DNA of 64,000 bases, taken from contig JBLDXI010000007.1 in assembly GCA_047495785.1 (NCBI GenBank), positions 3,472,001-3,536,000 of the forward strand, given 5' to 3'. Positions 596 to 37,687 of this stretch are shown piece by piece. The notes under the pieces are model-generated. The model saw only the letters and a list, made by a program, of their open reading frames with translations, did no database searches and had not been told where the DNA came from. Positions within the stretch are counted from its first letter, which is position 1. Each line of letters begins with the position of its first letter. Made by a program: the position numbers and the translations under genes. The DNA is from Lepidodermella squamata (lineage: Eukaryota; Animalia; Gastrotricha).

Positions 596-3500
596 ATGAG
601 ATTGGATTTGATCAATTTTTTGTACGATGTGCACGAATCGTCGGACCAGTATCCGATCGAGTCGTGCGCGGAAATGCTGCACGGCTTTCGCATCATCGAC
701 GCGAATGACCTCGATGAAATTATGAAGCACGCAACGATTGTCGACCGAAAATTCGCCTTGGTTCGCGCGCTTTCGACCAAAGATGACGTTATGATTCTAG
801 TTTGGGCGAAAATCCTGGACGAAATGGGATATTCGAATCTGGGCAATCGGGCGCGGCTCAAGTACAACGAGTCTATGGAAAATGAGCCCCCGCATCCGCC
901 TAAGCGAGGGCACTCAGAAGAGCGGCCAGGCAATGACACCGGTCGAACTGATGAAGCGTCGAGAGGGAGAAATTCACTTACTGTGACCAATGCATCTATC
1001 ATTGGAGATCACATCAGTTTTATCTCTGATACTCCAGCCTCCTACAAGCAGAAGAAAATGCAGCTGTAAGTCAATATTTTCCGAATATATACTGAATTTA
1101 GAAAATAAAGTATAAAATATAATATGATTTTTTTTCCTTTTTTCCTTAAATAAAAGGATTTCCCAATATATTTTGATTTTTAATCGAATATTTTGTATCC
1201 TATTTTCTCAAGAAGAACTATCGCAAAATCAATGCTTATTCCTTGTTGTTTTTTGTAGGGTGAAGAGTCCGAAAGATTGGCGCTTAGGTGATATCCCAAA
1301 CCACATTGGCATCTACCTCGACCGAGATGAAGAATGGGACATTCGGAACGCGATCCTTCAACTTTTCAACCCCGGCGCATCCTTCCCTCGTCCTCCGCCT
1401 AACAAGCGCCCAAATCGAGCCCCGCGTGTTGTTGTCCAGCCCTCAAATAATAAGCCGACCCTTTTCCCGAAAATCTCCCAAACCCAGAATGTCAGTGTCC
1501 TCGAGGGAAGCAATACTGCTCAGTTGGTAGAGATGCCGCCTCGACCTAATTTCCACTCCGAAAAAGGAGCCAGTCGCCCTTTACTGCTGGTTATAACGGG
1601 CCAAAGAGGCATTGGCAAATCGACCATGATCGCTCACATAATATCAGACGATGTCTTTCTACAACGGCTATGCAGTGTTGGCACTGTCATCTGGCTGAAT
1701 GCTGCTTCGATCAACGATGAAGATACGTTTTTCGAGGAAATTGCCTCGAAAATCGACTTTCAACACCCTAAGGATTCTCGGCTCAAAATGCGGGATATTC
1801 TACCATCCGTCCTAGCTAATCTCAAACAAGCTGTCCTACTAGTTGTTGATGATGCGACGACGGAAAACCTCGCTTGGTTCTCCCTTCTCGGCGGAAAATC
1901 GCTACGATGTGTTTTCATCTTCAAAGGCGAGAAAGATGACGCGTTTTTGACTGAAGAACTTGGTCCACAGCTCACGAGAGAGTCGATCATAGTGGAGCAT
2001 GTCGGACGGGTCCAATATGAAGACACGATTTGGATTTTGCGTAACCATTGGAAATCCGACCTGGCAATGCCTCCTGGTCTTAATAAGGAAAGCTTCGATC
2101 GAATCGCCGAGACCTGCCACGGCCTACCTATCATGACCAATCTGATATTAGCCCTGCTCGAAGCAAGTACTTCCTCCGACCAAACTCAGTCTGTAATGAA
2201 CTGCCTGGGCCACCATTCTGACCCTTACGAAACAATGAATAACCTGGTTGAGTTGTCGTTATCTCGAGAGAACGACGACTTCAAAACTCGCATTTTCTGG
2301 ATGTTGGCTTTTGGCCAGGGCCAGGCGATTTCCGTGGACGACCTGGCCTTAGTTTGGAACTTGCCACGACACAGGGCCAAACTCTTCTGCGTCGATTTCG
2401 TCGATAAAGCGCTCATTGTTTCAGCATCTTCCCAACCCGGCCAGATCAATAAATTGCAGGACAATTGCAGTTATGTTGTTCAGAAAACGATCTACGACGC
2501 TTTGGAGGCAAATTTGCAGAAGCAACGGAGAGACACGACTGCCTCGTTCGTGAATAAGCAGCTCAATTCTGTTGAGTATCGCCATCCTAACCTAGCCCAA
2601 GCTCGACCAGGCGAGAATTTCTTCCATTTGATCACAAGAATCGGCAATATCAGGCTATTCAAAACCATTGTAGATCTCATTTCGACCAAGGATCGAACCC
2701 TTGAGATCTTATGCCGAGAAAGGGACCGGTTCCAAAATCAAACACCCCTACATTTCCTGTTCGAAAAAGCTACGCAGGAATCTTGGGAGTTGCTAGCTCA
2801 AATTTGTGAGAGATTGGTCGATACAAATGTTGCTACTTCGGTTCGAGACAAAAGAGGGCGATCTTTGGCTGAGATGTCTATAACTGAATTAGCCTCCCGA
2901 CGAGTTGGCTCTGGTCAGACCTTGCTTATGTTATCAGCCCGGCAATTGTGTTACAGCTTTGTTCGGCAACTAATCTCAGTCGTTTCGACTTACGAAAATG
3001 GCTCATTGAAGGATGACTATCTAAATGCTAAGGACGACTACGGTCGGACGGTCCTTCATCAGCAATCTGCTGAGGAAGGTGGTAGCACTGAAATGGTCAA
3101 ATGCCTACTCGATGCTGGGGCTGATATTGAAGCTGTCGATAATAAACGGCGAACTGCCCTGCATTACGTTGCTCGATTTGGATGTATCGATGTTTGTGTG
3201 GTTCTCGTCGACAGGAAATGCGTTCATTCGCCGCTCGATGATTGCGGCAAAACTCCTTTGATGTTGGCTAAAATTGCAAGGCACTATGGAATCATCCGCA
3301 TTCTTGAGGGCTATCAATACGAAATCGAAAGGGAGAAGCGAGAAGGTCCTCGTAGATTACCTACCCCCGTCCAACGAGCTCATTCTGCTGGAGTAGGGGA
3401 TACAGATGTCTTCATGCATGACGCTCAAATGCAGACGATGCCTGTCACAACTCTACCCGGTTTCGATGAGTAAGTCAAATCATTTTTATGGATTGATTGA

Positions 3501-6500
3501 AATAAATCTCGCGATTTGAAAGTTTCAAAACCTCGAACAGTTTATTAGGCGCTCGGCGTACCACAGCGGAGTAAGCTCTCATTTTAGCTCTTTCCTCATC
3601 ATTAGATTCCTCAGTTCCCCCTTCCTGTCTTCTTGTAAAATGCTTTTTGAACATATTTTGAATTTAACCTTTTCTTTATTACTTTTCAGGCCATTACCGG
3701 GGGCGAAGAAGCAGAAAGATGACGAAGAGAGTCTCTACGATGAATATGGCAGTGAGACTGGGTCCGAGTACGATCCGGACGAATTTGAGGAAGAAATCAG
3801 AGACAACAACAAGCGCGCTAAAACTCTCGTATCACGGGCTACTACCAACAAAACAAGACGTGGCCAAAGCAACAGTGGGCGGAGTCGAACGACCTTGACT
3901 AAGGGCAACAGCCTGCTCAGCATTCGAGCCGCTAAAAATGCATCGAAGTCGAATTTAAAAGAGACCCGGAGGTCTGAGACGAATCTGACAAACCTCAGCT
4001 CTCGGCAGAGTGAATCGAAATTCAACCAGAACATGCGTCGAAGCGACTTGGCTCTGGAATCAATCGCTGGAACGAGCGATGTTGGCTACGACAATGAATC
4101 GACCCTGGTACAACAGGATCATCACGACGAGAGTACTCGAAGCCGAAAGGGGCAACTTATGGTGATAGAAAAGCCTCGAAATGCGGCGAAAGATGTGAGC
4201 CCTGGGCGTACACCTCGGCCGAATGACGTCCATGGCGCGACTCCCCGGCGAGATAGCAAAGACAGAAGCCCACGACGGCTGAGTGTCAGTAACAGGACAA
4301 GCATCGATGGAACTAGTCGAGTGACAGATTCAACGGTCGATATTCGAAAAGCAGATAACTCAGACAATGTAAGTCGAGTTAGGATCAATGGCTATCACGA
4401 TGAGGAAGATGAAGAAAGAGCCAGACGGAAACAGACTAAAGACGCAAAGAGGCTGCATCAGGCTAGTAAAATCAAGATCTGCATTCGAAGAGGTGATATC
4501 CCGGAGCAAATCGTCTACCTCGAACGAAGGGATGAGGAAGAGAAACTTCGAGATGCTATCAAAGACATGTGTGTTCGCGATAAGACTGGAATAACCGTGG
4601 TAACCAGCGAAAAGGGCTGCGGCGCGTCAACGTTGGTCGGTGAGGTCGTTCTTCAGGATGAATTCATCCGAGATGTTTGCTTCGTCGATATGGTACTATG
4701 GGTTAGAATGTATAGATCTAACACAGACGCATCAGCTGTTAGTCTCTTCGAATACGAGGAAGACACCTTCTTCCGATCTTTCGCTCGTCTCCTTCAAATT
4801 CGAGAGCCCTCTGCGAATGCGATAACAACTCGAGAACAGAAGGCGTCTATCCTGGAGCGAAAGTTGCGCGAAATTTTGGCGGATCGACTTCGTCCTCTGG
4901 TGCTTGTTGTTCAGAATGTGAATCAACGTGATCATGCCTTATTAGCTGCAAGTATCGCGAAGTTACGCTGCCCTTATCTCAAGGTCATTTTCGTTTCTCA
5001 AGCTTCGATCCTCAACCTCAATAAGCATGAAAATCAACGAGTTGATGACTTTGCAATGCTTTCAAGTTTTGGTGATCATGTCGGCCTCGTCCACAGTTGT
5101 ATCCGAGTGAAGGCGCTTTCCAAAGGGAAGTTGGGCGGTCTATTCCAGGGTTTCTGGTCCAGACCCTTGCAAAGCGTGAATCCTCTCGACGCAATCCTCC
5201 TAAAAGCTGGCGGGCAAGAAAAACTCTCACTAGGCGGTGGGATGTTGGAACTGCCAACAATTGAAGACCTCGCTGAAATCTACGTCGGAAGACCTAGTTT
5301 GGTAGCCAACATCCTCTACGTTGCCCTGAAATCTTGCTACTACGAACAAGATCTACAGGAAAGCTTCTACGGCTATGTGGAAAATTTGAGGCAGAGACAG
5401 CAACTTACATCAAACCCGATGATGCCACCTAAGCTCACCCAGTCTGAATCCAGCATTCTTCAGGTCATGAAGTTCATCCTCGAAAAAGAACCTAAGAATT
5501 TCAAGCGGCGGTACTACTCGTTCCTGTTGTTCGACGATAATGACGTGAGCGCCAATTCGACCAGCCTTAACCCAATTAATGAGAATGCCTCCGTAAGAAC
5601 TGCTCCTAACGGTTCGATCGCCGAAGAAATTGCAATGGCTATTGTTTGGAACCCATATCGTAACCGGTATGATAACGACCTGCTGCTGAGAGCTTTAAGG
5701 AGGCTAGGTCTCACTCGCTACGTCGGGAAATTCAACTATGAAGTTTGTCTCCTCGTCATGCCGAACTCGCTGGTTGGTCAACTGAGCAAACCTGACTTCC
5801 AAATGCCGATGAAGGCGCTGAAACTTCTAACATCCCTTGTTAGCTTCAGATCGTGGTTTTTGACCAATAGCTTATCTACCCCTGAAACGAACGATCCCCC
5901 GTCAACTGGTAGACCTCATGCCTTGTCATCTCAGAGGACTACGACCAGGACCTTCGACCGGAATACTACAGCAGCTGAGTCGGAGAATGCTGATGGTTTT
6001 TCTAGTACTCGTTACGGCCAATCAGCTGCGTTGGAAACGTCCTCTGCCAACATGCTCTCGCGAAAGTTCAACAAGGGAAAGAAAAGAGTCGTCGTAGCTA
6101 ATGTAAGTAAAACGTTTTTTGAAGAAGGGGCTTTGATATTTTATCAAACTCTAATTTTCCACACAACTTTTAATAAAAGATCGAACCGCGTGATTTGCAA
6201 GAAAAAATGGTAAACTTTGATTTAGTAGCGCTAATATCGCATATTAGAAGGTCATTTAATCATAGATGTAATATGATTTTAATAATAGACATTAGAATCT
6301 AGAATTCTCAAATTCTTTCATTTTTTTATTTATTTTTATTTTTTTTCAGCTCAAGCCAAAGAGAATCAGCACAACGAATCGGCTGGTGAACCGGTCCAAA
6401 GAGGTCGCTGAAGAAGCTGCGCAAGCCCAGGCTGCAGCGAAAGAAGCTCAAAAGGACAAGAAGCCAGTAAATCCTTACCTTCAAAAGCAATCCGTACCAA

Positions 6501-6610
6501 TACCGAGAAAACCAGTGCCTCATATAATGTTGGAGGGAGGCAAGGAGCGTCTAACGAACCCAGTCGTAGCTGTTCTTTACTACTTTGACAAAGTCATGCA
6601 TAGCCAGTAA
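596..6610 (+). CDS. NLR/STAND-like protein: CARD-like death fold, NB-ARC (Apaf-1/CED-4 type), ankyrin repeats, disordered linker, second degenerate NB-ARC; ~1,780 aa
   Basis: Exons 596-1065, 1259-3469, 3690-6102 and 6350-6610 join in frame through GT-AG introns (CT|G, GA|G, phase 0). CARD-like helices RLDLINFL...IIDANDLDEI...DRKFALVRALSTKDD...KILDEMGYSNL. Walker A GQRGIGKST, Walker B LLVVDDA, GLP motif CHGLPI. Ankyrin repeats such as GRTVLH, RRTALHYVARFG and GKTPLMLAK. The true start may lie upstream (ATG at 492). Confidence 0.8.
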
Positions 6611-6996
6611 TGTTAGCTTTTTCAAATTGTAGAACAGCGTGATAAATCGAACAAATTGATACAAATTCCTATGAACTAAATGCAATTTCATGAGCTGCTG
6701 TTGTTGTAAACAACTCTGTTAATTGATTTTCCATCATTATAATGTTTTCCGTTCATTTCCATTTTAATCCATTCAAACAAATATTTTCGGGCGAATCCTA
6801 TTTGTTGTAATCAATCTGCTGCTCTATGAATTTATGGTAAAAATAAACGTGGAGTTTCGATAAAATTTGGTTTATTCAAAAAACGCTGCAGGTGGGTATC
6901 AATATCAAGGTAGAACGGAAAATCAGATCACGCAATACAGGTTGTGTACTGTGGTAAGGAATCATCGTAATTAGGTATTTCCAATCGAAAATGAGC

Positions 6997-9900
6997 TCAA
7001 TATTCAGTGTTAAGGTGGGCTGATAGGCCTTCAACAGACGCCGAGGTCGGGAAATACTTTTTTGACAAGCTAGACGGTGAGAAGGCATCTCGATCGCTTT
7101 CATAGGACCGACCAGATTTCGATGCGTTAGTCCTCTGAGTCGAAAACGTTGGAGACGGAGATCGCGTTTGGAAGTTGTCAACTAAACTTCCATTGGTAGG
7201 ACTCGGAAGAGGACTGCTACGATTTCCTAGGTACTTTTGGATAATATCATCAACAGCCTGTCTCTCGGCTTTAGCCTCAGTGGTCAAGTAGCTGCCAGAT
7301 GGTTGCGGGGCGGGTGACGTAGGTCGTGGTGAGGTAGTTCGGATATAGTTGCTGGCGTAATTAACAGAGGTCGTACCTTCATTCGATCGCGGCGTGGGAA
7401 TGTTGTTGCTTGAGTAATGCTGCGTTTTCATATCGTCCTGGGGAGGATCGTAGGTATAGCCATTAGCAGTAGGTCGAATATCTGAGAACGTGACCTTCCT
7501 TGCAGGGCTGGATTGTTGATTTTCCGGCGTGTTGATAGATGCTGCTCGAACATAGCTGCTGGTGGAATTGTTGGCACGCCAAGAGGTTGTTGGCACTGTG
7601 CCAGCTGATGAATCAGATAGGTAACTTGTCTTGGGAGTGTTGATGGCAGCTGTTGTGGTAGTTAGACTCGACTTGGCTGGTGAAGAAATCACCGAACTGC
7701 TAAAAAAAGATTAGAGACGTCAAATTTCAATCTAAGCGTAAATAACTGGGAAGAGAACTGAGAGATTTTAGCGACACAGAGCCTACAAAATGCTCATTCC
7801 CCGCGTAGCTCCTAGCGAGAAATTCTTCCCGCTTTTAGTTCAAGGAAAACAGAGCCAACATTTCGTTAAACGGGACTGAGAAGTCTATAAGCTTTCCCTA
7901 TCCTAGGCCTAGGTTTGCGATGTAATTTGGAATATTGCAGGCTTTAGAGCAAAAAGAAGCAAACCTTTCTGAGCGAATTGGCTTCGTATTGTTGACCGCT
8001 TGCTGTGATGTAACATTCGCAGTTAAAGTCTTGATAGGACTGTTCGCCACACTCGTCCCAATCGGCGTAGTCTTTGTCCCATTGAAGCTATAATTTGACC
8101 CATGTATCGAATAGCTCGAAACAGTGGACGAAATGGTGGAGGTAATAGGCGTTTTACTGGCTGTCACGTTTGATCCGTTGTTATACAGCTCTTTCGTAAC
8201 ATTGTCTCCCTTGCCTTCGGAATTTGTTGAATTTAAAACAGGATTGCTGTTGTATTTCGAGCCGTAGCCATTCAAATAATCGCCAGGCTTGTAACTCGAA
8301 ACAGCTTCGCTTGATTTAGCATAGCTATTTGTCACATGCTCATCCAATAGCTTCTTCTCAGCCGGCTTGCTATACGAAATCTTCACCTCTTCATTCATCG
8401 ATTGGTAAGTAAGCCCCGTCGACGGCGGAATTCGTTTGTCAGCAACCAAATAATCGATAACACGGCGATGCGACATTTTAAGCTCTTCAACTTCTTGGCG
8501 AACTGAGTTGACCGCTGAAACCACATCGGTTAAGACCCGTTTTGTCTCAAGGCATGACGAGCAGTTGACAGGACGCTGAACTCCGACGGGGAGTGACATC
8601 AATTGTCGAGCTGTAGAGCTCAACTGAAGAGCGTTTAATGGAGTAGTCGACCGGCCGTGGTCTTCGTTAGATGCTTGACTGTCCGTATCAACAGAACTCG
8701 CGTTGCTTTTCGTAGAGCCGGTCGATCCTAAAGCGGACCATGTTGTAGTACTCTTCTTCTCCAGCGGATTCGGAGCGCTCGCTGCGATGTTCGAAATAAT
8801 CGCCATAGCCAAAGTGTTAACTGCAGACTGTTGGTCGCACTTTGTTCGCGCTAGGTCTGAAACTTGTCGATTAAGCCGTTCGTTATCTTGCCGCAAAGAC
8901 CGCAGCTCAGTGAGTAGGGCTGGTGAAAAAAGAAAGAAAAATTAGCTGAATGGGTGAATTAAGGTGGAATGGCTGAATGGGTTGTTTTTCTCACCATTCA
9001 CGCCGGCGAGGTCTTCGCCTTGAAAAAGTTGGCTCTGTTGTAGCAGGCGCAGTAAATTGTGCGCGTTATTGCCATTATTAGGCCTATTGTTTGCAAGTCG
9101 CGCAGGTGGCAAAAGACTAGTGGCAAATGCGCTCGAATAAGCAGCCATTCACCTGAATTATGGCCACGCGTCAAAAATGATTTTATCATCAATGGCACGC
9201 GAGTCAAAAATTCATTACTTCGAGCGCCATTGTCCGCCGATTTCACGTAAATATTGTGTTATTTCTGAATTTTAACGGCCGTTTTGTTGAATAAATAATG
9301 ACAAACTGTGATTTATCTCGTTTGTTTTTTCGATGATTTAGGCTGTCAGACTGGTATGTTTGTACACCGGCTAGTATCAGAATAAACAAAAACAACCACT
9401 TGAGTAACGCAGCATGCTCGATTAAAGTTTCATAAACTCGGCTCGAAAACATATATAAAGAAGACTGATGCGCGTGTATTTTGGAGTGTGGGTGTCTCAA
9501 CAACACCCAAGAGGCTACGCGCATTATCGATGTGCTTATTTGTTTTTACGCGTTAGTGCACACATGAGCGAAAACGCTCTTGTATTCTGCAAGAATTTCA
9601 GAATAAAATAGTGGAATTTCAAATATCAGAACACAACCTAATTGGAAAATATAAGACCATTGAAACTGAGGAATTTAGATTTTAGATTTTTAGAATTTTA
9701 AGAAATTAAAAAAAAAATTTAAATTTCTAGATTTTTTTACTAGATTTTCACTAGATCTTCAGGTAGTGCGCAGCAATTAGAATTTTTCAAACAAGTACTC
9801 TTTCTAAAATTGAAGAAAAAATCTAATTTTTAATAACATGAGGGAAATCTTTGAGAAATTTAGAGATTTTCCTGGCGGCATCAGAAACGCATTAAAGCAC

Positions 9901-15600: not shown

Positions 15601-17891
15601 GTTCGCTCGCTCCATCACCTCAAGCAATCTATGCATTGCACCTGCCAAGTCGCTTTTGTTAACGCCTTTGTAGGATATCGTTCCGTTTTCTAAGTAATAA
15701 GGCACCGGCCCATTGTAAGCATTTCTCATTAGTTTATACCAACGGCTAGGCTCGAAGGCAGTTTCCAGCTTAGCTATGTCGACATTGGTGTAGTCAGGCG
15801 CGTCGAATGGAGGGACGTAGTCGGGATGAAAGAGGACAAATCCATTGTGGTTAACAGCGAACGCATAAGCATTGACACCAAGTTTAGGAGGAGGCACGAA
15901 TGATCGGAAGAAATGAATTGGCAAATCAGTTCCGATCACTCCGAGAAGTTGTTGTTTACTCTAAAATACATAAAAATAGCGTAAAATGGATATAAATTCG
16001 AAGATATTGGCTTATACTGAGTCTGGTTTCTTATCGAAAACAGGAGCTGCAACCGAAGCCATCAATCTCATATCGGGCATACTATTCTATATTAAAAACA
16101 ACTCCTTACAGTCATCACCAAGCCTAAGTCATAAGTCTCACTTTGACGGTAACTTTCTTCTTCGGAGTTCCAGACCGACGAGTTCCAGATGACTTGGCAC
16201 TTGCATACTCGTATTCCTGTCAATAGTTTAATTTAGGAAAATGTGTGCCCTTAGACGTTTGCCACTTACCGCTTCGTCTATGTAAACGCCTGTCCAGGTC
16301 ACATCGTTGAAATCGGCTAGAGCTAAAGGTCTCGCCAATGTCGTAACATACTGCTTCATATTGTCCTGAACAGCAGCTATAGTTTTGATCTCGACGTAGT
16401 AGCCTTTGTTATTACAAGCCATTTTATTGATTTCCGGGTTGTAGCTGGCGTCTTCTCCAATAAGGAAGCTAAATACTCTGACTTGAGACAATCCTAGGTC
16501 TGTTGGATTTGGATTGTTGTATTTCGCGAAAATGTAGTCGTAGGTTTCATGAGCTCCATCAGTTATCAGCATAATCGCTCGATTACACATTGAACCTACC
16601 CGCTCTTCCGCGGTTTTGTTGAATAATTTAAAAGCCTCGATGAGAGCTGTTTCGAAGTCAGCCATATTTTTCGTATCTATCTTCCTCAACTTTCTCTTTA
16701 ATCTCTGAAAATTGGCAAAATTAGATATTTCAGAATTATTGAATAGTTTTACCTCTTTGTTCTCGGCTGTAGCTTGAAGTAAGGTCCCATTGAAGCATTG
16801 ATCAACGTAGGACACATTGTTAGTTTGTACTTGAATAATATTGAAAAAATCGTCCTCTCCTAATGTCTTTAAAATGTGGTCGATTGTGTAAGTTGCGATG
16901 CGAAACCTCAACCCGGTCATAGAGCCACTCGTATCGATCAGAATGACCAAATCTTTGGGCGAACAACTCGCTTGGACGTACCAACCCTTCGTACGACAGT
17001 CGAACATTTCGACTCTATCAGGAAATGTCGCCCATTTAGAGCCGGGGAATACTCGATAGAACCCTAGGGCTGAGCCGAAATATTGCCAATAGATAGTTTT
17101 GTCCTCATCTCGATTCTCTCGAAACTGATCATTCAACCGCATTGTCCACCTTGCTCCATTATTGATCTCCTTCGAGCCATCGAACACGTTTGTAGGGACA
17201 TGGACCACACTATGCGTCAAATTGACGTCTGCCTTAAAATGAGTATCATAATGCAGCTCCATGTTACGGAATGGGTTGTTCAAAGTGAAATCCTTGTCCT
17301 TCAAATGCGGCCGGTTGATGCGTTTTGCGTTGAAGTAGGTGATACCCTTGAGGCTAGGATCGAATTCATATAGGGTATAAGCCTGTTCTCCGGCTTTCAC
17401 TGACCGCTTCACCGCATCCATTTTCTGCTTCATTTTCAGCTCGAGTTCGTCAGATATCAACTGGGTAAGCATGACGCCATCTATTTGAACCAGGGTCCCG
17501 GTTAGAGGGGGCCGATCAGGGCGTAGCTCGTCTACAGGGCGGCGGCATTCCTCTGTTCTTTGGTCGGGTGGTTGTAGCGTGCACTGGTACTTCTAGAAAA
17601 TCAGTATGTGCCTGAAACTTCTGAAATCAAACCCTGAAAATTTACCAATTGGTAGTAAAGGCGTTGCGTGGCATTGCTTAGAACATCGCTGATCTGTTTG
17701 CTAGCTTCATCCGCTAGAATTTTGAGGCTTTTCTGCAAGTCTTTGATCGGAACCTGCTGCTGCTTCGAAAGAGAGGCGGAAGCCGAGCCTGAAGTTGTCT
17801 TCTGCCGGCCAGAATATCTCCTCTCTTCGCGCACATCCAAAAATCCGTAGGAAGCAGGTAAAAATACCAAGACAAAGGCAAGCGGTCTCAT
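12683..17891 (-). CDS. CACNA2D: Voltage-gated calcium channel auxiliary subunit alpha2/delta (alpha2delta-3/4-like)
   Basis: Signal peptide MRPLAFVLVFLPASYG; VWA_N region (VHVPTNVFD, YWQYFGSALG); FDCRTKGWYVQASCSPKD; MIDAS motif DTSGS...ITDG; Cache-domain motifs (YAFAVNHNGFVLFHP, CLLLDDHGFIV); C-terminal NLVLLVVDSNCIC...CGIL...KC...EDVSKC. Multiple short GT-AG introns. Confidence 0.93.
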
Positions 17892-21458: not shown

Positions 21459-24081
21459 TCAGTTTGATTGTTCTGAGAATATCGCGTGCAATTTTCGTAC
21501 GAATATCAAGCCAAGGTTTAGCCCGACACACAAAATTATAGTTAGCGATAAGGCCAAGCGTTGATATTCTTGTTCCTTGAAAATTAGCCCTGCTATGACG
21601 CCGCCACATGACAGTAGTATAATCGACCCGTAGAAGCTGTAAATGACTGCTTTGAGGTCATTAACCGTATTCAAGGTTTTCTGCAAAATCATCAAATAAA
21701 CATCTGCCGATAATTTTTAAGAAGCCAATCAACTCACCGATCGTAGGGCGTAAGCTAGCAGTCCTCCTCGGATGCTAAGAATTGCGAAAATTGCGCAGAA
21801 TGTCCCTAATACTCCCTGAGCCAAAGCGGAATCCCCTAATTCGCATTTGTATGTGATGGTATGATAGGCTACTTCTGCCCCGAATTCAGACCCATCGACT
21901 TTGCTGAGGTAACGCGTAGTTAGCATTGGCGAGAATAGGAACCAAATGGCAAGCATAAGAATGCACGCAGCTAAAGTAACCGAACCAACCAACAACGTGA
22001 AGCGGGTAATCAGCTTTCTGTTCAAAGGCCCTTCTGGAACATTATTGCTTGACGTCTTCGGGGCGGGGGTAGACGAACGGCTTACCAAAGTTGGCCTCGA
22101 AAGCTTAGAAATGTTTCGGCCAAGTGATACACTTCTGATAGACGCCGATATCTTGAAAGCCAGAAATAGCTTAGCTGTCATACTGTACAGAAGGATTCCA
22201 ATACCCACCAAGAGAGAACTTAATGAGGCCATGCAGTTCAGACCTAATGACTCGTCATAGCTTGGAGATTGAATAAGGGCGGAAATCAGCATCCACATGT
22301 TACCAATTAGAATGATGTAATTGAACACAGGCAATGACTTCTTGACCAAAAGTGATCGTCTCTTGAGGGACAAGACCAATAAAATGCCGAAGACAAAAAT
22401 AAGTTCAAAGCTTGAAGCAAAGACGATCGAGATGTAGCTCGACATTGATAGAAGAGGGGATTCTAATTCGACTATGAGGAGCTCATCAAAAGGTGCATTG
22501 CCGCTAGGTGTCCGCCAGTCGACAGGAAATGGGCCCATTGTAACTTCCTTTGACCCACTCAGATAAACTGCCACTGGTCGCATTGTCAAAGTTGAGCTAT
22601 TTTCGTATCTGTACTGGAAAAAAGCAAAAGCTACATCTCCGCCGGTGTTACGCGTGGTATTGCGCTCGAATCCAAGTTCGCCTATTTTCCCTTTGACCCG
22701 GGTTGAGAAGAGTGCTTGTTTCATTTCCTCAACAATGAAGGATCCATTTCTCTTGAAATTCTCGCTGTTAGTGGTCCAGTCTAACAGCGTTTGGTTCTTA
22801 CTGTTGAGGGATGCTTCGGTTGCGTTGAGAACGAACACCGCAAGTAGCAAAGGATCGTAGAACTGATCCCGCGTGCCCCATGCTTTTGATTGAGGACTGA
22901 CATCTACCCTAGATGCAATAGCTGAATCAAAATCTCTGGCTGAATTTCCGAGAGAGTCGACGCTAGCCCACTGCCCCAATTCCATAGTTGTAGCTTGGGT
23001 ATGAACGATAGTACTCTGCAAGACCTCACTGAGCATGGTTGTTGTGCACCAGCTGAAACGAAGGGGGTCGCTTTGTGTGTAAATACTTTTTGAAGGTACC
23101 AATATCACGTAACGAGGTCCGAAGAGGCCGAGGCGGTGGAACCAACAGGCCACTCTTGCCGAGTACAGGGCTCCGAGGAGAATAATCCGAGCATCTGATG
23201 CTTTCATTTCTTCTACTGTTGCCTGGACATCATCAGATTCTGGTGGGATGTTGTAAACGAAGGGAATTTTGAAAATCCCCAGCGTTTTCACTCCATATTT
23301 CGCCTCAAGCAATAGCGAGGCTTCGATTTCCATTTGATTATTCAAACCATACATTTCTGAAATCTGAGCCTTTTTCTGCCAGTTCATCATTCGCATGAAT
23401 TTGCCGACAGCGTCAACGGATTCGCTGAATGAAGGCGAGAGATTGAACAGGTTTTTCAGCAGGTCACGCCTCAAGTCCACTTCATCCATTATAGTTGCAA
23501 ACGTTATCTTTAAAAAATTGAATTGACTGTGATGCTCGCCAGAAAATGCCAGCTTACTTACAGATATGAAGTTATAGAACGGCAAGGTTGGACCGTTGTA
23601 GTAGTGGGCTGGGCAACTTGAGTGAATAAGGAGAGGCAATCTGTTCGAGGCCTTTCCATTTTCAGCCATCTTCGAATGGAAAGCTTCAATGCCTGGCGGT
23701 CTGCTACACTGCAAAAATAGGCGAAATTAGGTATATCAAGTTGCATTTCTGCCTTCTCCTCCACTCATAATAATTCAACCTGATATAGAAACTCACGTAA
23801 TCATTGTATGGGTCGATAGCAAGCTCGTATTTAGCGAGAAGATTCGGGATATTAGATAGCGAATCCAACACATAACGCATAGCTTCGGTTGTTATGGGCC
23901 CGTTATTTATCGATGGGGTGCCAAAATAATTACAAGATGCCAACAGACTAATGACCGGGCGGGAATCATTTGGGTTGTAGTTTGTTCGGAATACCCGCTT
24001 TGGCATGGGGCTATCCATCTGTAATTTCTGACCGTTAGATATCAAAAACATACATGCAACTGCAAATGCGATCACCAACAT
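21459..24081 (-). CDS. Class C GPCR, GABA-B receptor-like (Venus flytrap + 7TM, no cysteine-rich domain); paralog A, 3 introns
   Basis: Signal peptide; VFT motifs (MKASDARIILL, CWFHRLGLFGPRYV, FYDPLLLAVFVL, VKGKIGELGF); 7TM with KKSLPVFNYIILIG, TM3 Cys (GLNCMAS), ECL2 Cys (TYKCEL) and LAYALR...VNDLK. Confidence 0.85.
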
Positions 24082-24902
24082 CACTGTTCGCTAAAAGGTT
24101 CTAATGTAGTAGGTAGATATGTAGCTGATCATACTTTCAACCAGTTGACTTATTTGATGAACAGTTGCGACGAGCATTGACCACGGATTTAAGTGTGTCG
24201 CGTTCCAGGAAACCGTGGAATTTCGTGTGCTTCTAATATGACATTTCTGAGTGACACATCATTCAACCTAGCGTCTCTTTTTTCACTATTCGCGGAATAA
24301 AAGACAATTTATTAAGGCCGGGTAGATGCCAGTTTCCTGTCGTCTATATTTATTTTTATATTTCCTACCCTTTGTCGTCCAGTTTGAACCCTAGGCTAAT
24401 ATCAACTGCTAAATCCTGTCAATGCGTTCGAGATGACTTTATTGACAATATCCTATACACAAGCAATACGATATTTCCTGCAAGCCACCGAAGCACGCAA
24501 CATGTAGTTGGATGTTCAACATAGATAGATAAAGCATCCGTTAGTGGGTTAGTAGGCTAAGCTAGAATAATGTAGATGAACGGGGTCACGAACGATATAA
24601 AACTGTTCCACTTCCGTTATTTTACATTCGCATATCAATCGGCGCCACTCAACAACCTCGCACCCTACACGACATAGATTTATGTGCGATAAAATATGCG
24701 TGATGCAAATTCATTCTTGCAACAAGAAATTCAATTAGATTCCAGAAGAATAGGGTAAATAGCGATCAAGGGTAAAAGAAACTGAGAGATGATGGTGAAT
24801 CAGAAATCGGCAACATTCAGCCCAGAAATAAAATCCCAATAGCGAAGCTTGACAGGGATCACAAACTTGAAAATAATTCATGTATCGCAAATGATTGATA
24901 GA

Positions 24903-26558
24903 TCACAGATCGTCGCTCGCATTGCAATCGTGTCGTGGTATGCCATCAGGGCAGTCGCAAAGCATGCTTAAACAACGTTTGACGCCATTACAGTCGCATA
25001 TTTCTACGAAGCACGGAATGAAAACATCTTACCTAAATTACGGTATGGTAACTAACGTTGTAGGCAGTCAGGACCGGTTTTCCACTTATCAAAACACGAG
25101 CATGTATTGCCACCAGTGCACCATCCATTCTGTGGACAGGTTACGTTTCCGCAAATTTCTGAGACGGGAAAAAGTCAGGAGACTACTGAATCATCAGGAA
25201 AACCAACGATTATTGCATGCTGCGCCGGTCCAGCCGGGCTTGCAAGCGCATCTGTTTCCCCTGATGCAGAAACCATTGTTGCAGGGGGAGGTGCACTTCG
25301 CTGTGAAAAATTCAACGAATACGGTTTCCCTTAAACTGCACTATTCTTACCGAGATTGTAAGTTTTGATATCATAAATGTAGAGCCTTTTCTCGTGCTCA
25401 GAGTGGAAAGCCAAAACTGGTGGAAGAGCCCTAGTGTCATTAATCGGGAGGTACTCCTTGAACATGAGTCCGTTCGCAATAGTTTGGCACGAATCAAAGT
25501 CGCAGTATTCGACCCAAATTTGACTGCCGCCTCTCACAACAACTCCCAGTTGAAATCGGTCCTCAAACATTGGCGATTTTAGTCTGAACCGGAATTCGTT
25601 ATCAGGTGCCGTAGCAGTGAGGGCTTTTGCTACATTCGAAATTCTCAAGTACAGATCGGAGTCGGTTTCGTTCACAGTGACGTATTTGACCTGTAACCCA
25701 GCGAAGAAATTACTTTCGTTATGACCACCCGGGTAGGCTAATGTCCATCGATTCGATGAGTTCGTTATAGGGCCGAAGAAAAACACCCCACCAACATCAC
25801 GAGAGATGAAAAACGTTACGTTTATCGAGAGGTCTGTGAGCTGCATCGCCTTGATATGAGACATTTATATGCGACCGAGAAATTGAGGTTGTAAATTCTC
25901 ACGGTTGGACTGATAACATAAGCCCTATTCCAAGTCGAAGAGTCATTATGCGCCATTCGGAGAATGTAGTCTGAGTAGAACAATCTGCTATCCCCACCGA
26001 ATCGCAAGTAACGCCAATATTTTTCTAAAACAGCAGTTATCAACAATTAGCCAATTACTGGAGAAATAAACTTACGACTCCTTCCATCTGCGATCCAGCT
26101 GAATTCAGGTTCATAGTTGAGCGGATTCATCGGCGGGTTGCCAATCACTGAAATCAAAATTATTTGTCGATTTTTTTTCCTTTGGGTTAGAGGATTTATA
26201 TGCCTTCAGAGCAATCTGAGCCGGTGAATCGTGCCAAACAGGTGCAAATTCCAGGGCCGGTGCATAAACCCCCGGCCATAGAGCATTGGTCACAGATTGC
26301 TGGATTCAAAAGCTATAAGCCTCGTGGGAAATAGATATGTAAAAACTGCATTACGAGTCGCACATGTGGATCCAGTCCACCCACCGAGGCATTGGCATTT
26401 ATTTGTGGCGATGCAACTGCCTCCATTGATGCAAGGACTGCTGCAAGCTAAATTCAGAATAACGACGCAATCATCATATATGCTATAGATATTAACATAC
26501 TTTGACCTCGGATCAGCCTCGTATGAACAATCAACAAAACTGCTATCGCTTTGAGCAT
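24903..26558 (-). CDS. Secreted EGF-repeat protein with a central beta-sandwich (ConA/lectin-like) domain; paralog 1
   Basis: Signal exon MLKAIAVLLIVHTRLIRGQ; EGF exons CSSPCINGGSC...CQCLGGWTGSTC and CDQCSMAGGLC; ~200-aa all-beta-looking domain; further EGF and Cys exons to TGA at 24903. Intron 3 is GC-AG. Confidence 0.8.
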
Positions 26559-26640
26559 TTTGTCTTCCAATGTAAATTTCAAACTTATCTATGAATTCAT
26601 ATTCAGTTCACTGTCGAATCCGGCAAAATCTCTCGACTAA

Positions 26641-26813
26641 CTTCCCGCACTGTTCATCCCGCAGTCATCTCGCGCATTATCCCGCCCGGGATATAGTGTT
26701 GGGCGACTGCAGGAAAAACGCGGGATGACTGTGCGATGACTGCAGGACAGCTGTGAAATACGCAGTAGTTCGTCGCGCCCTAACCCAACAATATCGCGCA
26801 CGACTGTGGGAAG
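26641..26813. repeat. Small GC-rich imperfect foldback (possible MITE-like element)
   Basis: CTTCCCGCAC/CATCCCGCAGTCATC on the left; GATGACTGCAGG, GCGGGATGACTG and GACTGTGGGAAG on the right. Confidence 0.3.
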
Positions 26814-27214
26814 ATGGCCGATGTATAGATTAAAAAGCACAGACATAGCATTGCGTCAGCAAAAATCAATGCACCGAAATAACTGGCAACAATCCCGCCT
26901 ACGTTCTGTCACCCGAGACATCTTGGAGGTTGATCGTCAATAATTCGGTTCACAACAGCAAAATATGTATTTATGATTTCTGAAAAAAACGGCGTATTGG
27001 CGTCTTGCGTCTGGCGTCATCGCTGCAGTAACGTAGTATTCCTTTTTAATAATTCAACTCGGATGCTCGGATTAACAAAGGCATTGAGCTAGTAATTAGG
27101 GATTTTTAACCCCAACGATCATGTGGTGATTGGATTACGACAAATCATGTGAAGAATATTGCTTATGATCTGTAAGAAGATGCGACGTCTGTGGCGAGGC
27201 ATTTTTACACTCGG

Positions 27215-27564
27215 GTTTAAACTGAAGGTTCTAATACCGTCTATTTCAAAACTCCAGCATCCAGCACTACTGGCGCAGTTGGTTTATTCATTTAGCGTTG
27301 GCGCCGAGTTCGTGTTAGACATAGCCGCTGTTATTTCCCGCCCCATCCGCCTGCTGCCGATAGCCTGGACCTAGTACTGGATTCGAGCTGATCAACATTG
27401 AAGACCAGTGCCTGAAAATTGTGCTGAACAAAGTGATTGGGAGGTTCTGGAAAGGTGCCAAAAATGTTGCTGGACACGATTGATAATGGGTTATCAGTAA
27501 CATCATACCTTTCTGCGGGACCTAAATCGGCCATTGCAGAACCCATTTGATACAAAACACACAT
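27215..27564 (-). pseudogene. Degraded remnant resembling the lectin-like domain family of this cluster
   Basis: Fragments NPLSIVSSNIFGTF, HNFQALVFNVDQL and WSFEIDGIRTFSL lie in broken frames and resemble IPLTYNVESSAMSGIF, AEFRLIIQTVEDRI and LYIYDIKTYNL elsewhere in the window. Confidence 0.35.
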
Positions 27565-27890
27565 AAAAATGCATTTCGAGTCACGATTCTTTAAGTTGTA
27601 TTATTTCTTTCGGTCAAATTAATTGAGATTTCCAGAAAGATATGTTTTTCTCACTTGCGTCTGCACCCTTTCGAGCTTTGAGAAAACAAACTAGCCTTAA
27701 TTGTTCATAGAGTTGAGCTCCAACGTTAGACTCGGACAAGAGCAGAGCATTTCGCATAGACAAAATTCATTGCGCACAAGTCACACGAGGACGAATTAAG
27801 TGCATCCTGTTTTAAATTTCAAAATCAACAGTTGCAGTTTGCGAACAATTTTTAACGAGAAATCTCGAAAATTGCCAGAGAATTCAAAGA

Positions 27891-30218
27891 ATGAAGTTAA
27901 CAGAGATTATTCTGGTTATAACTTTGATGCCTGGCAGCTATACTGCAAAACCCAACAATATTTCCGTTCTCGTCGTAGTTCCTAAAACTGGCGATGACCC
28001 CAGGAAAGGCGAGGCTTGCATGATAGCAGCTGAGATCGTCCTCGAGGAAATGAACCGGCGAAGCGACTTCCTATTTGATCTCAACATTGTACCCGATTTC
28101 GCCGATGAAGGCCCAAGTGGGACTCTCGCCTCTCAACAACTCGTTAAATACCGCCAGAACGCCATTGACAACAAGGATCAACTTTTCTCCCCAATTTTCG
28201 CTGGCCTCTGGTTTTCTGGGGGTTGCCAGGGCGCATCCCCGACAGTGTCCCATCTCGACATGGTTCAGTCAGCATTTGGCTGTAATAGCCCAACAATGAC
28301 GGCTAGACATGATTTGTACCCGAATATGTACCGAATGCGAGCCGGCGCTGATACCTACCTTTACCCTCGTCTTAAATTCATTCGGGAAATTGGACTCTGG
28401 AACAAATTCGGTTTGATTTCGGACGTCCTCAACGCTGCATCATTCAAATTCGCGATTTCAATGGCAGTTGAAGGGCAAGCCCTCGGATTCGAAATTCCAT
28501 ACTTCGACGTGGTTACAGATATCACAGATCAAACGGTTTACATGATGAAGAAAGCGGATTTGCGAATCGTTGACTCGCCTATGAATTCTGCACCTCTTGT
28601 TCTCAAGCTGCTATGCAAAATGTACGAATACGGCATGACGGGGCCAAGGTATGCGTTTGTTATGCAAATCACTGCATATGTCGAGCCTCTGAGCCTACCC
28701 GAAATGGTCACGCCGACTTGCCGGCGATCTGCGGTTTGGGAACAGTATAAAATCACCTTTTGGATCGGTAGCACAACTCGAATTGTTAGTGACCCGCTGT
28801 TGAAATCAACTTTAGGCTACGACTCAAACGAATTCGATGATAGATTCGACAATAAATGGCAGGCGATGGGGAAAAGTGTTGAGGTAAAACCCGCTGATTA
28901 CGACAAGAGGACTGTTTGCCATGATGGAGTTTTAGCTGCAGTAATTGCTCTTGATTCTACGATAAAACGGCTTGGCAACCTCAATATGACTATAAACGAC
29001 TACGCAAGACATCCCATAATGGTCATGAAAATCGCCAATCAGTCAATGGCGCAGGTGGACTTTGTTGGGCTGAGATTTGGAAGGTTCCGGTATTCGGCTA
29101 GGCTCGAACCTGATGATGATGTTTTTGTGGCTCTTCAGTGGCTCGGCTTTGACCGAGGGGCTCAAATTGTCAGTTGGCTCCAGCGAGCTAACCCGGACGC
29201 TTCTCCGAATAATTACTCCAGTTACTCTGTCGGCAGGAATTCTCTCAAGCCAACCTGGATTACCAACGACCGGAAGCCTCCGAAGGACAGAAGGAACGAG
29301 AAAACCGAACTTTCTGCTATACCCGATGGCTATTTTTGGGCTATCACCAGCTTGGCTTTGTTGAATTTCATTTTTCAAATCTCGTTTGCGACAAGGTTGT
29401 TAATTCTAGATGGTCGCATGGAGAAATCCAAGCTAATGGCACTCACAGGATGTTTTTTCATGAACGCAATGTCTATTTTCCTGGGTTACCCCGTTGTTTC
29501 AGATCAGCATATTTTCGTCTATTTCCTTCAACGTATTTTTGGAGCCTTTTCCATTCTACTGATTCACGGAAGCCTCACCTTTCATATAGTCTTCATCCGT
29601 CACAAGGCGAAAGGGTGTGTTGTTCGCGTCAATCATGTTGTTGACCGCGCTTCTTCTCTTTCAAATGGAGCCAAAGTCAGAAGATTTGTGAAAATCAAAT
29701 ATAGCGTCGATGAAACCGATCTGAAAAGAGGTCAACTAAAATCAATCGCGATATCTGCAATTGGAGCCATTGGTTATCTCGCGATTTGGTTTTCAACCGA
29801 CCCACCTTTAAAAGTCGTAGGTGTTCTTGAAACGGCCAGGCCGTACGATGAGGGTACTGACACCTTCACAATTTATGAAGCTGTCTCGTTCGAGTCGTCA
29901 CAGGAAACAGCGTGGATTGCCCCTTTGGTTGTCGCAAACGCGATCTTATACGCAGCTGTTTCGTGGTTTTCCTACGATATCCGGCGCATGCATTTCAATA
30001 GGTCTCAGACAATCCAGCTCAAGCGATATCGACTCGCAATGGCTAATATGACAACGCTCTTTGTATGTGCTGTTTTACTGGTTTTTGCGCTGGCGAATTA
30101 CGCCGCTGAGAAAATGATCGCTTTGTCGGTAGTTGCGTGGTTGAGCTCTGCGGTTACATCCGTCATTCTACTGAATTTCAACGTCAATGGCTTGAACGTA
30201 ATTCAAGCTCATAAGTAG
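27891..30218 (+). CDS. Class C GPCR, GABA-B-like; paralog B, intronless, 775 aa
   Basis: Signal peptide; VFT (CMIAAEIVLEEMNRRSDFL, LYPNMYRM, LCKMYEYGMTGPRY, VCHDGVLAAVIALD, VDFVGL, KPPKDR); seven hydrophobic segments. Confidence 0.9.
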   Translation: MKLTEIILVITLMPGSYTAKPNNISVLVVVPKTGDDPRKGEACMIAAEIVLEEMNRRSDFLFDLNIVPDFADEGPSGTLASQQLVKYRQNAIDNKDQLFSPIFAGLWFSGGCQGASPTVSHLDMVQSAFGCNSPTMTARHDLYPNMYRMRAGADTYLYPRLKFIREIGLWNKFGLISDVLNAASFKFAISMAVEGQALGFEIPYFDVVTDITDQTVYMMKKADLRIVDSPMNSAPLVLKLLCKMYEYGMTGPRYAFVMQITAYVEPLSLPEMVTPTCRRSAVWEQYKITFWIGSTTRIVSDPLLKSTLGYDSNEFDDRFDNKWQAMGKSVEVKPADYDKRTVCHDGVLAAVIALDSTIKRLGNLNMTINDYARHPIMVMKIANQSMAQVDFVGLRFGRFRYSARLEPDDDVFVALQWLGFDRGAQIVSWLQRANPDASPNNYSSYSVGRNSLKPTWITNDRKPPKDRRNEKTELSAIPDGYFWAITSLALLNFIFQISFATRLLILDGRMEKSKLMALTGCFFMNAMSIFLGYPVVSDQHIFVYFLQRIFGAFSILLIHGSLTFHIVFIRHKAKGCVVRVNHVVDRASSLSNGAKVRRFVKIKYSVDETDLKRGQLKSIAISAIGAIGYLAIWFSTDPPLKVVGVLETARPYDEGTDTFTIYEAVSFESSQETAWIAPLVVANAILYAAVSWFSYDIRRMHFNRSQTIQLKRYRLAMANMTTLFVCAVLLVFALANYAAEKMIALSVVAWLSSAVTSVILLNFNVNGLNVIQAHK

Positions 30219-30688
30219 TTGATAAACATATCTTGCGGTTGACTGCTGATGGGCTAGTACATACAGAAAACTTTAACCACGTAGTAACGATGCTCTTTCT
30301 CGTCATCTTCACAAATCAATCTTTTAATACTAAATTTGTCTGTGTCTTTGTTGAGGAAGTGCATCAAAGTAAAAAAATAGGTGAAGTCTCTTGTTTTTTT
30401 CAAAGTTTCGCGACAAAAAGATGAGTCTCGAAACTCAAAACTGGATTGGATAAAATGGCGAACCGTGAAACAAGCTTAAGGGAAAAGGGAAATCTATGAA
30501 ATCTAAACTGGAAGTACTCCGAATTCGACAACATAACTCCGACCTATCGACTTAGGTATAGCTTCCTCGTTTTTTTCAGTTTTCTTCATTTTGATGTAGG
30601 TTTATTGACGTCAATAACTTTCTATAAAGTCATTTTTCTGTTGATTAACTACATACTCGAATCACCGACTATCAAACTAATCAATAAA

Positions 30689-32338
30689 TCACAGTTCGTC
30701 GTTCGCATTGCAGTCATGGCGCACGGTACCGTCCGGGCAGTCACACAGCATGCTTAGACAACGTTTCGCTCCATTGCAGTCACATATTGCTGCAAATTAA
30801 CAAATAAAACCAAATAGCATATTGTAAAAATGATAGCTAACGTTGTAGGCAGTCGGGCCCGGTTTTCCATTTATCAAAACACGAACAGCTATTTTCAGCT
30901 GAACACCAGCCATTTCGTGGACAGGTTACGTTTCCGCAAATCTCTGCAATTAGAACATTTTATATATTTGCTGAGTCACTAACAATTATCGAACGGTTGT
31001 TGCATGCTGCGCCGGTCCAGCCGGGCTTGCAAACGCATTTGTTATCTCTGATGCAGTAGCCATTGTTGCAGGGGTGGTAACATTTAGCTAAGGCAACGTT
31101 CGCTGAACTATGACTTTCTACCAGTTCAACATTCTTACCTAAATTGTACGTTTTGATATCATAAATGTAGAGATTTTTGTCATGCTCAGAGTGGAAAGCC
31201 AAAACTGGTGGAAGAGCTCTGGAGTCGTTAATTGGCAGATACTCCTTGAACATTAGTCCATTCGCAAGAGTTTGACACGAATCAAAGTCGCAGTATTCGA
31301 CCCAGATTTGACTGCCGCCTCTCACAACAACTCCTAGGTGAAATCGGTCCTCGAACATAGGCGATTTTGGTCTGATCCGGAATTCGTTATTAGGTGCTGT
31401 TGCACTGATGGCCTTGGCAACATTAGCAATTCTCAAATATAAATCAGAGTCTGTTTCGTTCAACGTAACGTATTTGACCTGTAACCCAGCGAAGAAACTA
31501 CTTTCGTTATGACCGCCTGGGTAGGCTAATGTCCATCGATTTGATGAGTTCGTTAGTGGGCCGAAGAAAAACGTCCCGCCAACATGGCGAGTGATGAAAA
31601 AAGTCACGTTGATCGAAAAATCTGTGAGCTGCATCGCCTGAAAAAGAGACAACTCCAATTCAAAGCATTATGAATTGGGAATATATTACATTTGTGCTGA
31701 TAATATAAGCCCGGTACCAGGACGAGGAATCATCATGAGCCATTCGAAGAATGTAGTCTGTGTAGAACATTCTACCATCGCCACCGAATCGAGCGTAACA
31801 CCAATACTTCTCTAAAACAGCAGCTATCAACGATCAGCCGATGAATGGACACCAAAACCTACGACTCCTTCCATCTGCGATCCAGCTGAATTCAGGTTCA
31901 TACTTGAGCGGATTCATTGGCGGGTTGCCAATCACTGAAATAAACTATTATCAGTTTATTTACTCATGGGCGAAGGAATTATATGCCTTCGGAACAATCG
32001 GAGCCGGTGAATCTTGCCAAACATGTGCATATTCCAGGGCTGGTGCATAGACCTCCGGCCATGGAGCATTTGTCACAGATTGCTAGAGATTCGAGAGCTA
32101 AAGATCTCGTGGGAATAGAGGAATCGAATATGCATTACGAGTCGCGCATGTAGATCCAGTCCAGCCGCCAATGCATTGGCATTTATTTGTGGCGATACAG
32201 GTGCCTCCATTGATGCAAGGACTGCTGCAAGCTAAATGTAAGAAATGCAAATCTTTTGGAAGCAACATAGTCAAACATACTTTGCCCTCGTACAAGCCCT
32301 GCGTTAATAAGAGAAAAAAGAGTTATTGCCGCGAACAT
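30689..32338 (-). CDS. Secreted EGF + lectin-like domain protein; paralog 2
   Basis: Same exon structure as paralog 1 and clearly similar DNA; signal exon MFAAITLFSLINAGLVRGQ; GC-AG intron at 31935-31986. Confidence 0.8.
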
Positions 32339-37515: not shown

Positions 37516-37687
37516 GATTTGCTTATTTGAATTTGACTGGACCCATGCCACAAACGAACATTCAAATGCGCTAATTCAAATAAGCTTTTTTGCTATCAAC
37601 GTCCACGAAAAAAACTAGAAATGGAGCCTCCTGGAATCGAACTTGCGTTCTCTAGAAATTGAAGCTAGTGCCCCAACCAATGAGCAA
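37516..37687 (-). mobile_element. tRNA-derived SINE-like element, copy 1
   Basis: Minus strand: TTGCTCATTGGTT (A-box-like) and AAGTTCGATTCCA (B-box-like), followed by a ~90-bp body shared with copy 2. Confidence 0.6.

Follow-up and report, generated by a model that had tools for sequence, protein, structure and literature searches.

Does a gene of the gastrotrich Lepidodermella squamata carry two NB-ARC-type modules on one polypeptide chain, the second of them degenerate, and is that second module maintained or is it a decaying copy? The question is raised by positions 596–6610 of a stretch of 64,000 nucleotides (nt) (assembly GCA_047495785.1, contig JBLDXI010000007.1, positions 3,472,001 to 3,536,000), the whole of which we call the window. 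Four open reading frames (ORFs) are listed there on the + strand, at 596–1069, 1173–3473, 3640–6213 and 6386–6610. When the splice junctions are read base by base on the window sequence, exons 596–1065, 1259–3469, 3690–6102 and 6350–6610 join at canonical GT..AG sites, all of them in phase, into a coding sequence of 5355 nt that specifies 1784 amino acids (aa) and a stop, with no internal stop. The predicted product is probably a STAND protein composed of a CARD-type domain, an NB-ARC module, ankyrin repeats, a linker, a second NB-ARC-type module and a short tail. An earlier examination of this DNA, made from the letters alone and called here the sequence-only reading, had proposed that four ORFs splice in frame into one protein of ~1,780 aa, and in the window this model holds; the peptide strings that it quoted for the two modules are all present in the window ORFs.

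The gene has an ortholog on two ENA metagenome contigs, L001 and L002, which represent one species and are 99.2–99.7% identical. On L002, which is gap-free, a six-exon model (657–1102, 1173–3821, 3942–4436, 4675–5357, 5559–7108 and 7172–7396) has canonical and in-phase junctions throughout, and encodes an open frame of 2015 aa with no internal stops. Its domain order is that of the window gene, so that the architecture, sought elsewhere, is found again in this metagenome species. The opposite-strand neighbour gene downstream is syntenic, and the ortholog has two further introns, of which the first interrupts the linker and the second lies immediately ahead of the pseudo-P-loop. The ankyrin exon of the ortholog also carries an extra ~150 aa of GQL[VI][VI]NG-type repeats after the ankyrins (L002 3300–3800; L001 2520–3000); this repeat run gives a weak bactofilin-like Pfam match (E 0.0036) and has no counterpart in the window gene.

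The family to which the gene belongs is very sparsely sampled. A search with module 1 against 1.84 billion representatives returned four matches, namely the ortholog (P0002) and three weak relatives from metagenomes (P0003, P0004 and P0005). All three relatives are NB-ARC proteins by Pfam, at 32–48 bits, the match in P0004 covering positions 9–247 of 248, and P0004 and P0005 combine NB-ARC with ankyrin by the same criterion. Homolog searches with exon 3 and with exon 1 each found the ortholog alone, and no product of ~1800 aa was found full length in the homolog searches. In the JGI metagenomes, neither a profile scan with module 2 nor a search for the exact spliced junction 3469/3690 gave a match.

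Domains of the predicted protein and constraint on the second module

The first part of exon 2 (1259–2580) encodes module 1, an NB-ARC NTPase. Pfam matches it to NB-ARC (PF00931; cut-off 23.5 bits) with 26.7 bits, over profile positions 20–115 only, and the match of the ortholog reaches 33.1 bits over positions 12–207. With GxxxxGK[ST] as the criterion for Walker A and hhhhD[DE] for Walker B, module 1 has both motifs (GQRGIGKST and LLVVDDA), and both are invariant in the ortholog. It further possesses the pre-P-loop motif RLGDIP.., a conserved GLPI motif and the winged-helix motifs FWMLAF and LALVWN. At the position of the MHD histidine, where the alignment is uncertain, both species have glutamine (VQK), as against VHP and LHE in P0003 and P0005. 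The second part of exon 2 (2581–3469) encodes helical repeats, followed by ankyrin repeats (~aa 745–845) and a short tail, and ends in the donor GA/GTAAGT. It matches Pfam Ank_2 at E 5e-17, and a sequence search of PDB with the ankyrin region gives ankyrin and DARPin matches down to E 6e-37. The sequence-only reading had seen here an NB-ARC with ankyrins, and the Pfam results agree with it. An animal NLR of the NACHT-LRR type was considered and rejected, since NACHT reached 18.2 bits, under its cut-off of 26.7, and no LRR match was found by Pfam.

Exon 3 opens with a low-complexity, charged linker of ~255 aa (3690–4455), which is probably disordered and contains one conserved motif, DDEESLYDEY. 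The linker leads to module 2 (4456–5883), a degenerate NB-ARC-type module comprising a nucleotide-binding, a helical and a winged-helix domain. Compared by BLASTP, exons 2 and 3 match at E 2e-10 over 131 aa, from the P-loop to Walker B, and in a second high-scoring segment pair with 15 of 26 positions identical in the pre-P-loop motif. By hhalign, modules 1 and 2 are related at 95% probability (E 3.6e-8) over 293 columns, which run from the pre-P-loop motif via the P-loop, Walker B and GLPI/GRPS to the winged-helix motifs. Judged by these comparisons, the internal NB-ARC repeat exceeds chance. In protein-language-model space the clusters nearest to module 2 are NB-ARC families (score 0.97), and the one Pfam match is AAA_16, at E 0.0096. 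AlphaFold2 models the nucleotide-binding domain of module 2 at a predicted local distance difference test (pLDDT) of 75–88, and VIA-align places this domain closest to that of CED-4 (Z 14.3; root-mean-square deviation, rmsd, 3.0 Å over 156 aa), followed by NRC4 (14.0), ZAR1 (13.6), Dark (13.2) and Apaf-1 (12.2). Module 2 thus matches the STAND/AP-ATPase fold at a Z of 12–14, the outcome on which the sequence-only reading had made its proposal depend.

The catalytic motifs of module 2 have departed from those of module 1. Its P-loop, SEKGCGAST, has alanine at the lysine position, and at the Walker B position (LVLVVQNV) QN stands in place of the acidic residues, whereas the surrounding framework is present as RRGDIP.. 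before the P-loop, GRPS, and the winged-helix motifs YSFLLF and MAIVWN. In module 2 of the ortholog the P-loop reads CSGSST, with serine for lysine, and the Walker B position has EE. The Walker A lysine is gone in both species, and therefore its loss is older than the split between them, after which the module has been maintained. The acidic residues of Walker B are missing in the window species only. The sequence-only reading had taken module 2 to lack both features; this stands for the lysine in both species, and for Walker B in the window species alone. The Walker A lysine holds the beta and gamma phosphates of the nucleotide, and because it is absent, nucleotide cycling by module 2 is unlikely.

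Comparison of the window gene with L002 gives 64% amino acid identity for the CARD-like domain, with a nonsynonymous divergence (dN) of 0.26. Module 1 follows with 56% and a dN of 0.38, the ankyrin repeats with 63% and 0.33, and module 2 with 61% and 0.32, as against 26% and 0.94 in the linker and 39% and 0.69 in the tail. The synonymous sites are saturated (proportion of synonymous differences >0.8 in the six main regions, and 0.67 in the spacer at aa 96–157), and we therefore rely on dN and polymorphism counts rather than on a dN/dS ratio. Between L001 and L002 there are 31 synonymous and 3 nonsynonymous coding differences. Downstream of the ankyrin exon all 8 of 8 are synonymous, 4 of them in linker exons, a result expected by chance at an estimated ~1.5e-5 if synonymous changes make up about 1/4 of random ones. 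Of the 40 best-supported differences listed between strains or haplotypes of the window species, 39 are synonymous. The open frame of the linker is kept in both species despite its 26% identity. By these substitution patterns, the constraint on module 2 is at least equal to that on the active module 1, and module 2 is a maintained pseudo-NTPase under strong purifying selection and not a decaying copy. Neutral evolution of module 2, which the sequence-only reading had named as evidence against itself, is contradicted; of the dN/dS value that it had proposed to obtain, the low dN and the synonymous polymorphism were found, and the ratio itself is not computable with dS saturated.

The DNA run X2, to which the window itself belongs, carries a second haplotype or strain, and two 283-nt contigs at 5001–5283 differ at 25 positions. 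Of the differences listed for X2 between 1290 and 3340, all of which lie in exon 2, 36 of 37 are synonymous third-position changes, and synonymous diversity is therefore very high.

Exon 1 (596–1065) begins with the ATG at 596 and encodes a CARD-like six-helix domain (aa 1–95), followed by a poorly conserved spacer, and ends in the donor CT/GTAAGT. Intron 1 (1066–1258; GTAAGT..TTTTGTAG, phase 2) has a counterpart at the same position in L002, and exon 2 resumes at 1259. Exon 1 has no Pfam match at E<=1, CARD included, and no NCBIfam match, and a sequence search of PDB gave chance matches to designed TIM barrels only. The first 100 aa lie nearest to CARD clusters in protein-language-model space (score 0.91; 22 of 30 hits). 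AlphaFold2, supplied with the ortholog, models a six-helix bundle at pLDDT 73.5, for which Foldseek ranks the CARDs of CED-4 and Apaf-1 first (probability 0.99, E 0.13). VIA-align gives Z 10.8 for the CED-4 CARD (rmsd 2.5 Å over 93 aa), 10.2 for that of Apaf-1 and 9.9 for that of Dark, with matches spanning 88–96 aa; other CARDs reach 8–9, and death, pyrin and DED domains 6.5–8. The N-terminal domain, as modelled, is thus a probable CARD-type death fold. Of the CARD that the sequence-only reading had named, the resemblance of the predicted fold to the CARDs of CED-4 and Apaf-1 is recovered, and detection at the sequence level is not.

At the other end of the protein, exon 3 closes with a variable Ser/Thr-rich stretch (5884–6102), which has the conserved KGKKRVVVA at its end and the donor AAT/GTAAGT, and exon 4 (6350–6610) encodes the C-terminal tail up to the stop TAA at 6608–6610. 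The last 17 residues, NPVVAVLYYFDKVMHSQ, are near-identical in the ortholog, and the preceding 120 aa are poorly conserved.

One gene or two, and the state of the second module

The two halves of the gene meet at intron 2 (3470–3689), which runs GTAAGT..TTTTCAG in phase 2 and contains AATAAA at 3501–3506 and an in-frame ATG at 3640. The ortholog has this intron in phase, at the same position and with the same arrangement of a TAA in the donor, and all junctions from the ankyrin exon to module 2 are in phase in both species. The linker exon of the ortholog (L002 3942–4436, 165 codons) contains no methionine, the first methionine of the next exon comes ~25 aa before module 2, and the conserved linker motif, DEEES[IL]YDEY, sits upstream of that methionine. 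The post-ankyrin exons of the ortholog therefore cannot begin a separate protein. A sequencing run, X1, whose identity as RNA is a guess, covers exons in both halves of the gene. Its depth is zero in the bin 6119–6315, inside intron 3 (6103–6349; GTAAGT..TTTTCAG, phase 0), and 15.6 and 23.2 in the flanking bins, and an X1 contig stops exactly at 6102, the exon 3 donor, with 54 further letters that map elsewhere. For intron 1 there is no splice joint among those listed; the joints that are listed are opposite-strand contig artefacts. On this comparative basis a single gene appears highly probable, as the sequence-only reading had it: the in-phase junctions in two species, the ortholog linker exon devoid of methionine and the synonymous polymorphism of the linker all argue for it.

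Several points weigh against a single protein of the composition described above. The head model, at pLDDT 73.5, was built from three sequences, and for a modelled helical bundle a Z near 10 is not decisive. The AlphaFold2 model of module 2 is poor overall (pLDDT 50.7), and in its fold search the AAA+ domains of the origin recognition complex (ORC) and Cdc6 come within ~1 Z unit of the AP-ATPases. Judging from its sequence, the EE at Walker B of the ortholog may permit residual nucleotide handling by module 2. At intron 2, no read or contig joint across 3469/3690 is among the joints listed, and that X1 is RNA is a guess; the window has the TAA at 3471–3473, within the exon 2 donor, and beyond it the AATAAA and the in-frame ATG. 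In the window species alone, it is formally possible that a short CARD-NB-ARC-ankyrin product is followed by a separate downstream gene.

According to one such alternative there are two adjacent genes, the CARD-NB-ARC-ankyrin gene ending at the TAA and being polyadenylated after the AATAAA, which lies 28 nt downstream, and a pseudo-NTPase gene starting from the ATG at 3640 in the polypyrimidine end of intron 2. In a variant, the two would form something like an operon, and trans-splicing of the downstream gene would use the TTTTCAG acceptor at 3689. The joints listed, which do not include 3469/3690, are compatible with either version, and the automatic calls on L001 and L002 give separate ORFs, though these calls were made without splicing. 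However, the TAA is there because any phase-2 GTAAGT donor creates one, and it recurs in the ortholog; the AATAAA and the ATG are not conserved. The ortholog offers no suitable start in the exons that follow its ankyrin exon, these exons are connected by three successive canonical in-phase junctions (one in the window), and the linker exons show synonymous polymorphism only. Two genes, in either version, are therefore very unlikely in our view. A single gene might otherwise make two products, if retention of intron 2 yielded a short CARD-NB-ARC-ankyrin isoform that stops at the in-donor TAA; the ratio of full-length to short product would then set the level of the tethered pseudo-module. The TAA is found in both species and the AATAAA in the window species, and X1 depth is nonzero in bins overlapping intron 2, but these bins also include exon sequence. 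Moreover, the ortholog has no AATAAA at this place, and the automatic stop of such a donor needs no selection. Regulation of this kind seems quite unlikely, and we continue with a single gene that encodes the full-length chain.

Within that chain, module 2 could still bind nucleotide and act as a second, non-canonical switch, for instance by binding without hydrolysis, rather than as an inert scaffold or decoy. Binding without hydrolysis is known from the D2 ring of NSF and from degenerate ABC sites. In favour of this, both species retain the glycine-rich loop of the P-loop together with its Ser-Thr (GCGAST and CSGSST), EE is found at the Walker B position of the ortholog, and module 2 is as tightly constrained as module 1. 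Against it, neither species has the Walker A lysine, QN occupies the Walker B position in the window species, and cysteine stands at the position of the MHD histidine, where the alignment is uncertain. On balance a nucleotide-binding module 2 is unlikely, and a nucleotide-dead module remains the reading that we develop below.

Origin of the modules and genomic surroundings

The sequence-only reading had described the two modules as internal duplicates. Their homology is supported (BLASTP, hhalign), and duplication within the gene is not confirmed: module 2 scores 27.8 bits against module 1 and 29.7 bits against the NB-ARC of P0004. The term thus says too much, since P0004 resembles module 2 at least as closely as module 1 does. 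Module 1, in turn, is closer to P0003–P0005 (36–50 bits) than to module 2. Both modules share the motifs RxGDIP...DEE..[IL]R.AI and [DE]EDTFF, which suggests that they are specifically linked to each other. As far as the sequences tell, duplication within the gene and fusion of neighbouring paralogs are equally possible. P0004 (897 aa; L003 1700–4393), which comes from the same metagenome sample as L001, is a single-module protein with an NB-ARC and a long ankyrin array. Directly behind it on L003 lies an opposite-strand gene for a Ddi2-like aspartic protease. Rfam had no match in the window, in L002 or in this further metagenome contig L003, and thus yielded neither a spliced-leader RNA nor a taxon marker.

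In the window, two Ser/Thr-rich ORFs (231 and 332 aa) occupy 6997–8896 on the - strand, tail to tail with the gene, and are probably exons of one gene; the second of them (7898–8896) matches L002 8985–9152 at 50% by tblastx. Farther away, 21729–40665 and 58264–59949 hold a cluster of the class C G-protein-coupled receptor (GPCR) type, with ANF_receptor ligand-binding regions and a 7tm_3 match; its single exons are unusually long and reach 783 aa. Two genes for Cys-loop ligand-gated channels and one of the alpha2-delta type, with VWA_N and VWA, are found at 47160–53720 and 16228–17472 and belong to the neuronal gene set of animals. An EB module is also part of the Pfam content of the window. 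By this content of the neighbouring genes (class C GPCR, Cys-loop, VWA_N, EB), the window is animal genome.

A putative role and comparison with known systems

What could a maintained but nucleotide-dead module do in such a protein? Module 1 is probably the working nucleotide switch, which would oligomerise as in Apaf-1, CED-4 and NLRs. The ankyrin repeats would be the sensing or autoinhibitory part, and they or a bound partner would release the autoinhibition. Oligomerisation would then cluster the CARD-type heads, to which a caspase or adaptor with a CARD would be recruited. Module 2 would probably neither bind nor hydrolyse nucleotide normally, and would persist as an NB-ARC surface of structural use, held by a flexible tether; it might dock in cis on module 1 and hold it off, or fill protomer positions in the oligomer. 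A structural role would suit the strong conservation of module 2 and its long flexible tether. The sequence-only reading had suggested a decoy, an inhibitor or a scaffold, comparable to a sensor/helper NLR pair joined in a single chain. On a bolder reading, which we hold to be possible though far from probable, an active CARD-NB-ARC-ankyrin sensor is tethered by a long disordered linker to a nucleotide-dead NB-ARC that inhibits it within the molecule or joins it in the oligomer, an arrangement built independently in an animal lineage. If true, the protein would be a single-chain counterpart of the sensor/helper or guard/decoy NLR pairs, of a kind not yet described from animals.

At the core of cell-death and innate-immune signalling are STAND switches, among them Apaf-1, NLRs and plant R proteins, and their regulation by dead extra copies is a question that the plant receptors with tandem NB-ARC domains have made topical. 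The gene would offer an independent case from animals, in which a maintained pseudo-NB-ARC is tethered to an active module behind a CARD-type head. It would also be a natural construct with which to ask whether a dead NB-ARC inhibits or nucleates an apoptosome-like oligomer. More generally, it adds to the evidence that some small invertebrates own an expanded NB-ARC-ankyrin repertoire, separate from the NACHT-LRR type of vertebrates.

Among characterised proteins, Apaf-1, CED-4 and Dark likewise have an N-terminal CARD-type fold directly before an NB-ARC NTPase, the CARD of the window gene being a predicted fold. CED-4 is the best structural match both for this predicted CARD (Z 10.8) and for the nucleotide-binding domain of module 2 (Z 14.3). 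By analogy, the nucleotide-gated oligomerisation that clusters CARDs in Apaf-1, CED-4 and Dark probably takes place here as well. In contrast, Apaf-1 and Dark have WD40 repeats where the window gene has ankyrin repeats, and in none of the three does a degenerate second NB-ARC module follow. Searched with a profile of module 1, PDB gave no Apaf-1, CED-4 or NLR chain at E<=10, and searched with a profile of module 2 it gave no STAND chain; the link to Apaf-1 and CED-4 is therefore one of fold only. Orthology to them was rejected, since no such PDB chain was matched at E<=10 and none of the four matches among the 1.84 billion representatives is Apaf-1-like. By sequence, the gene is one of a lineage-specific family of NB-ARC-ankyrin proteins in the NB-ARC clade of STAND NTPases. 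Its own family is that of the NB-ARC-ankyrin STAND proteins P0003–P0005, the most similar to module 1 (36–50 bits); P0004 has one module and ends after its ankyrin array, and to this plan the window gene adds a second module.

An impaired NTPase or kinase copy is kept beside an active one in the ORC subunits, in the D2 ring of NSF and in kinase-pseudokinase tandems. For the role of module 2 these, like the extra NB-ARC of the plant tandem NLRs, are analogies only, ORC and Cdc6 appearing in the fold search as general AAA+ neighbours.

The closest precedent for two NB-ARC domains on one chain comes from plants. Literature phrase searches found tandem NB-ARC domains in plants only, and no tandem STAND module in an animal. 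The wheat proteins WTN1 and Sr62-NLR have two NB-ARC domains per polypeptide, and AlphaFold models of Sr62-NLR put the partner pseudokinase on NB-ARC2, from which one NB-ARC has been proposed as a docking surface (bioRxiv 10.1101/2024.08.30.610185, 10.1101/2024.08.30.610287). The sequence-only reading had not recognised the architecture from characterised animal proteins; in plants, WTN1 and Sr62-NLR provide a precedent for it. These proteins, and also rice Pib, have two NB-ARC domains per chain as does the window gene model, which in two species unites two NB-ARC-type modules in one conserved, in-phase gene, with no spanning transcript among the joints listed. However, the plant tandem NLRs are built as CC, two NB-ARC domains and LRR, whereas in the window gene ankyrins and a linker of ~300 aa separate the modules, the N-terminus carries a CARD-like head, and no LRR is present. 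The tandem NB-ARC of the window gene arose independently of that of plants, in an animal, and what sets the gene apart is its tethered pseudo-module.

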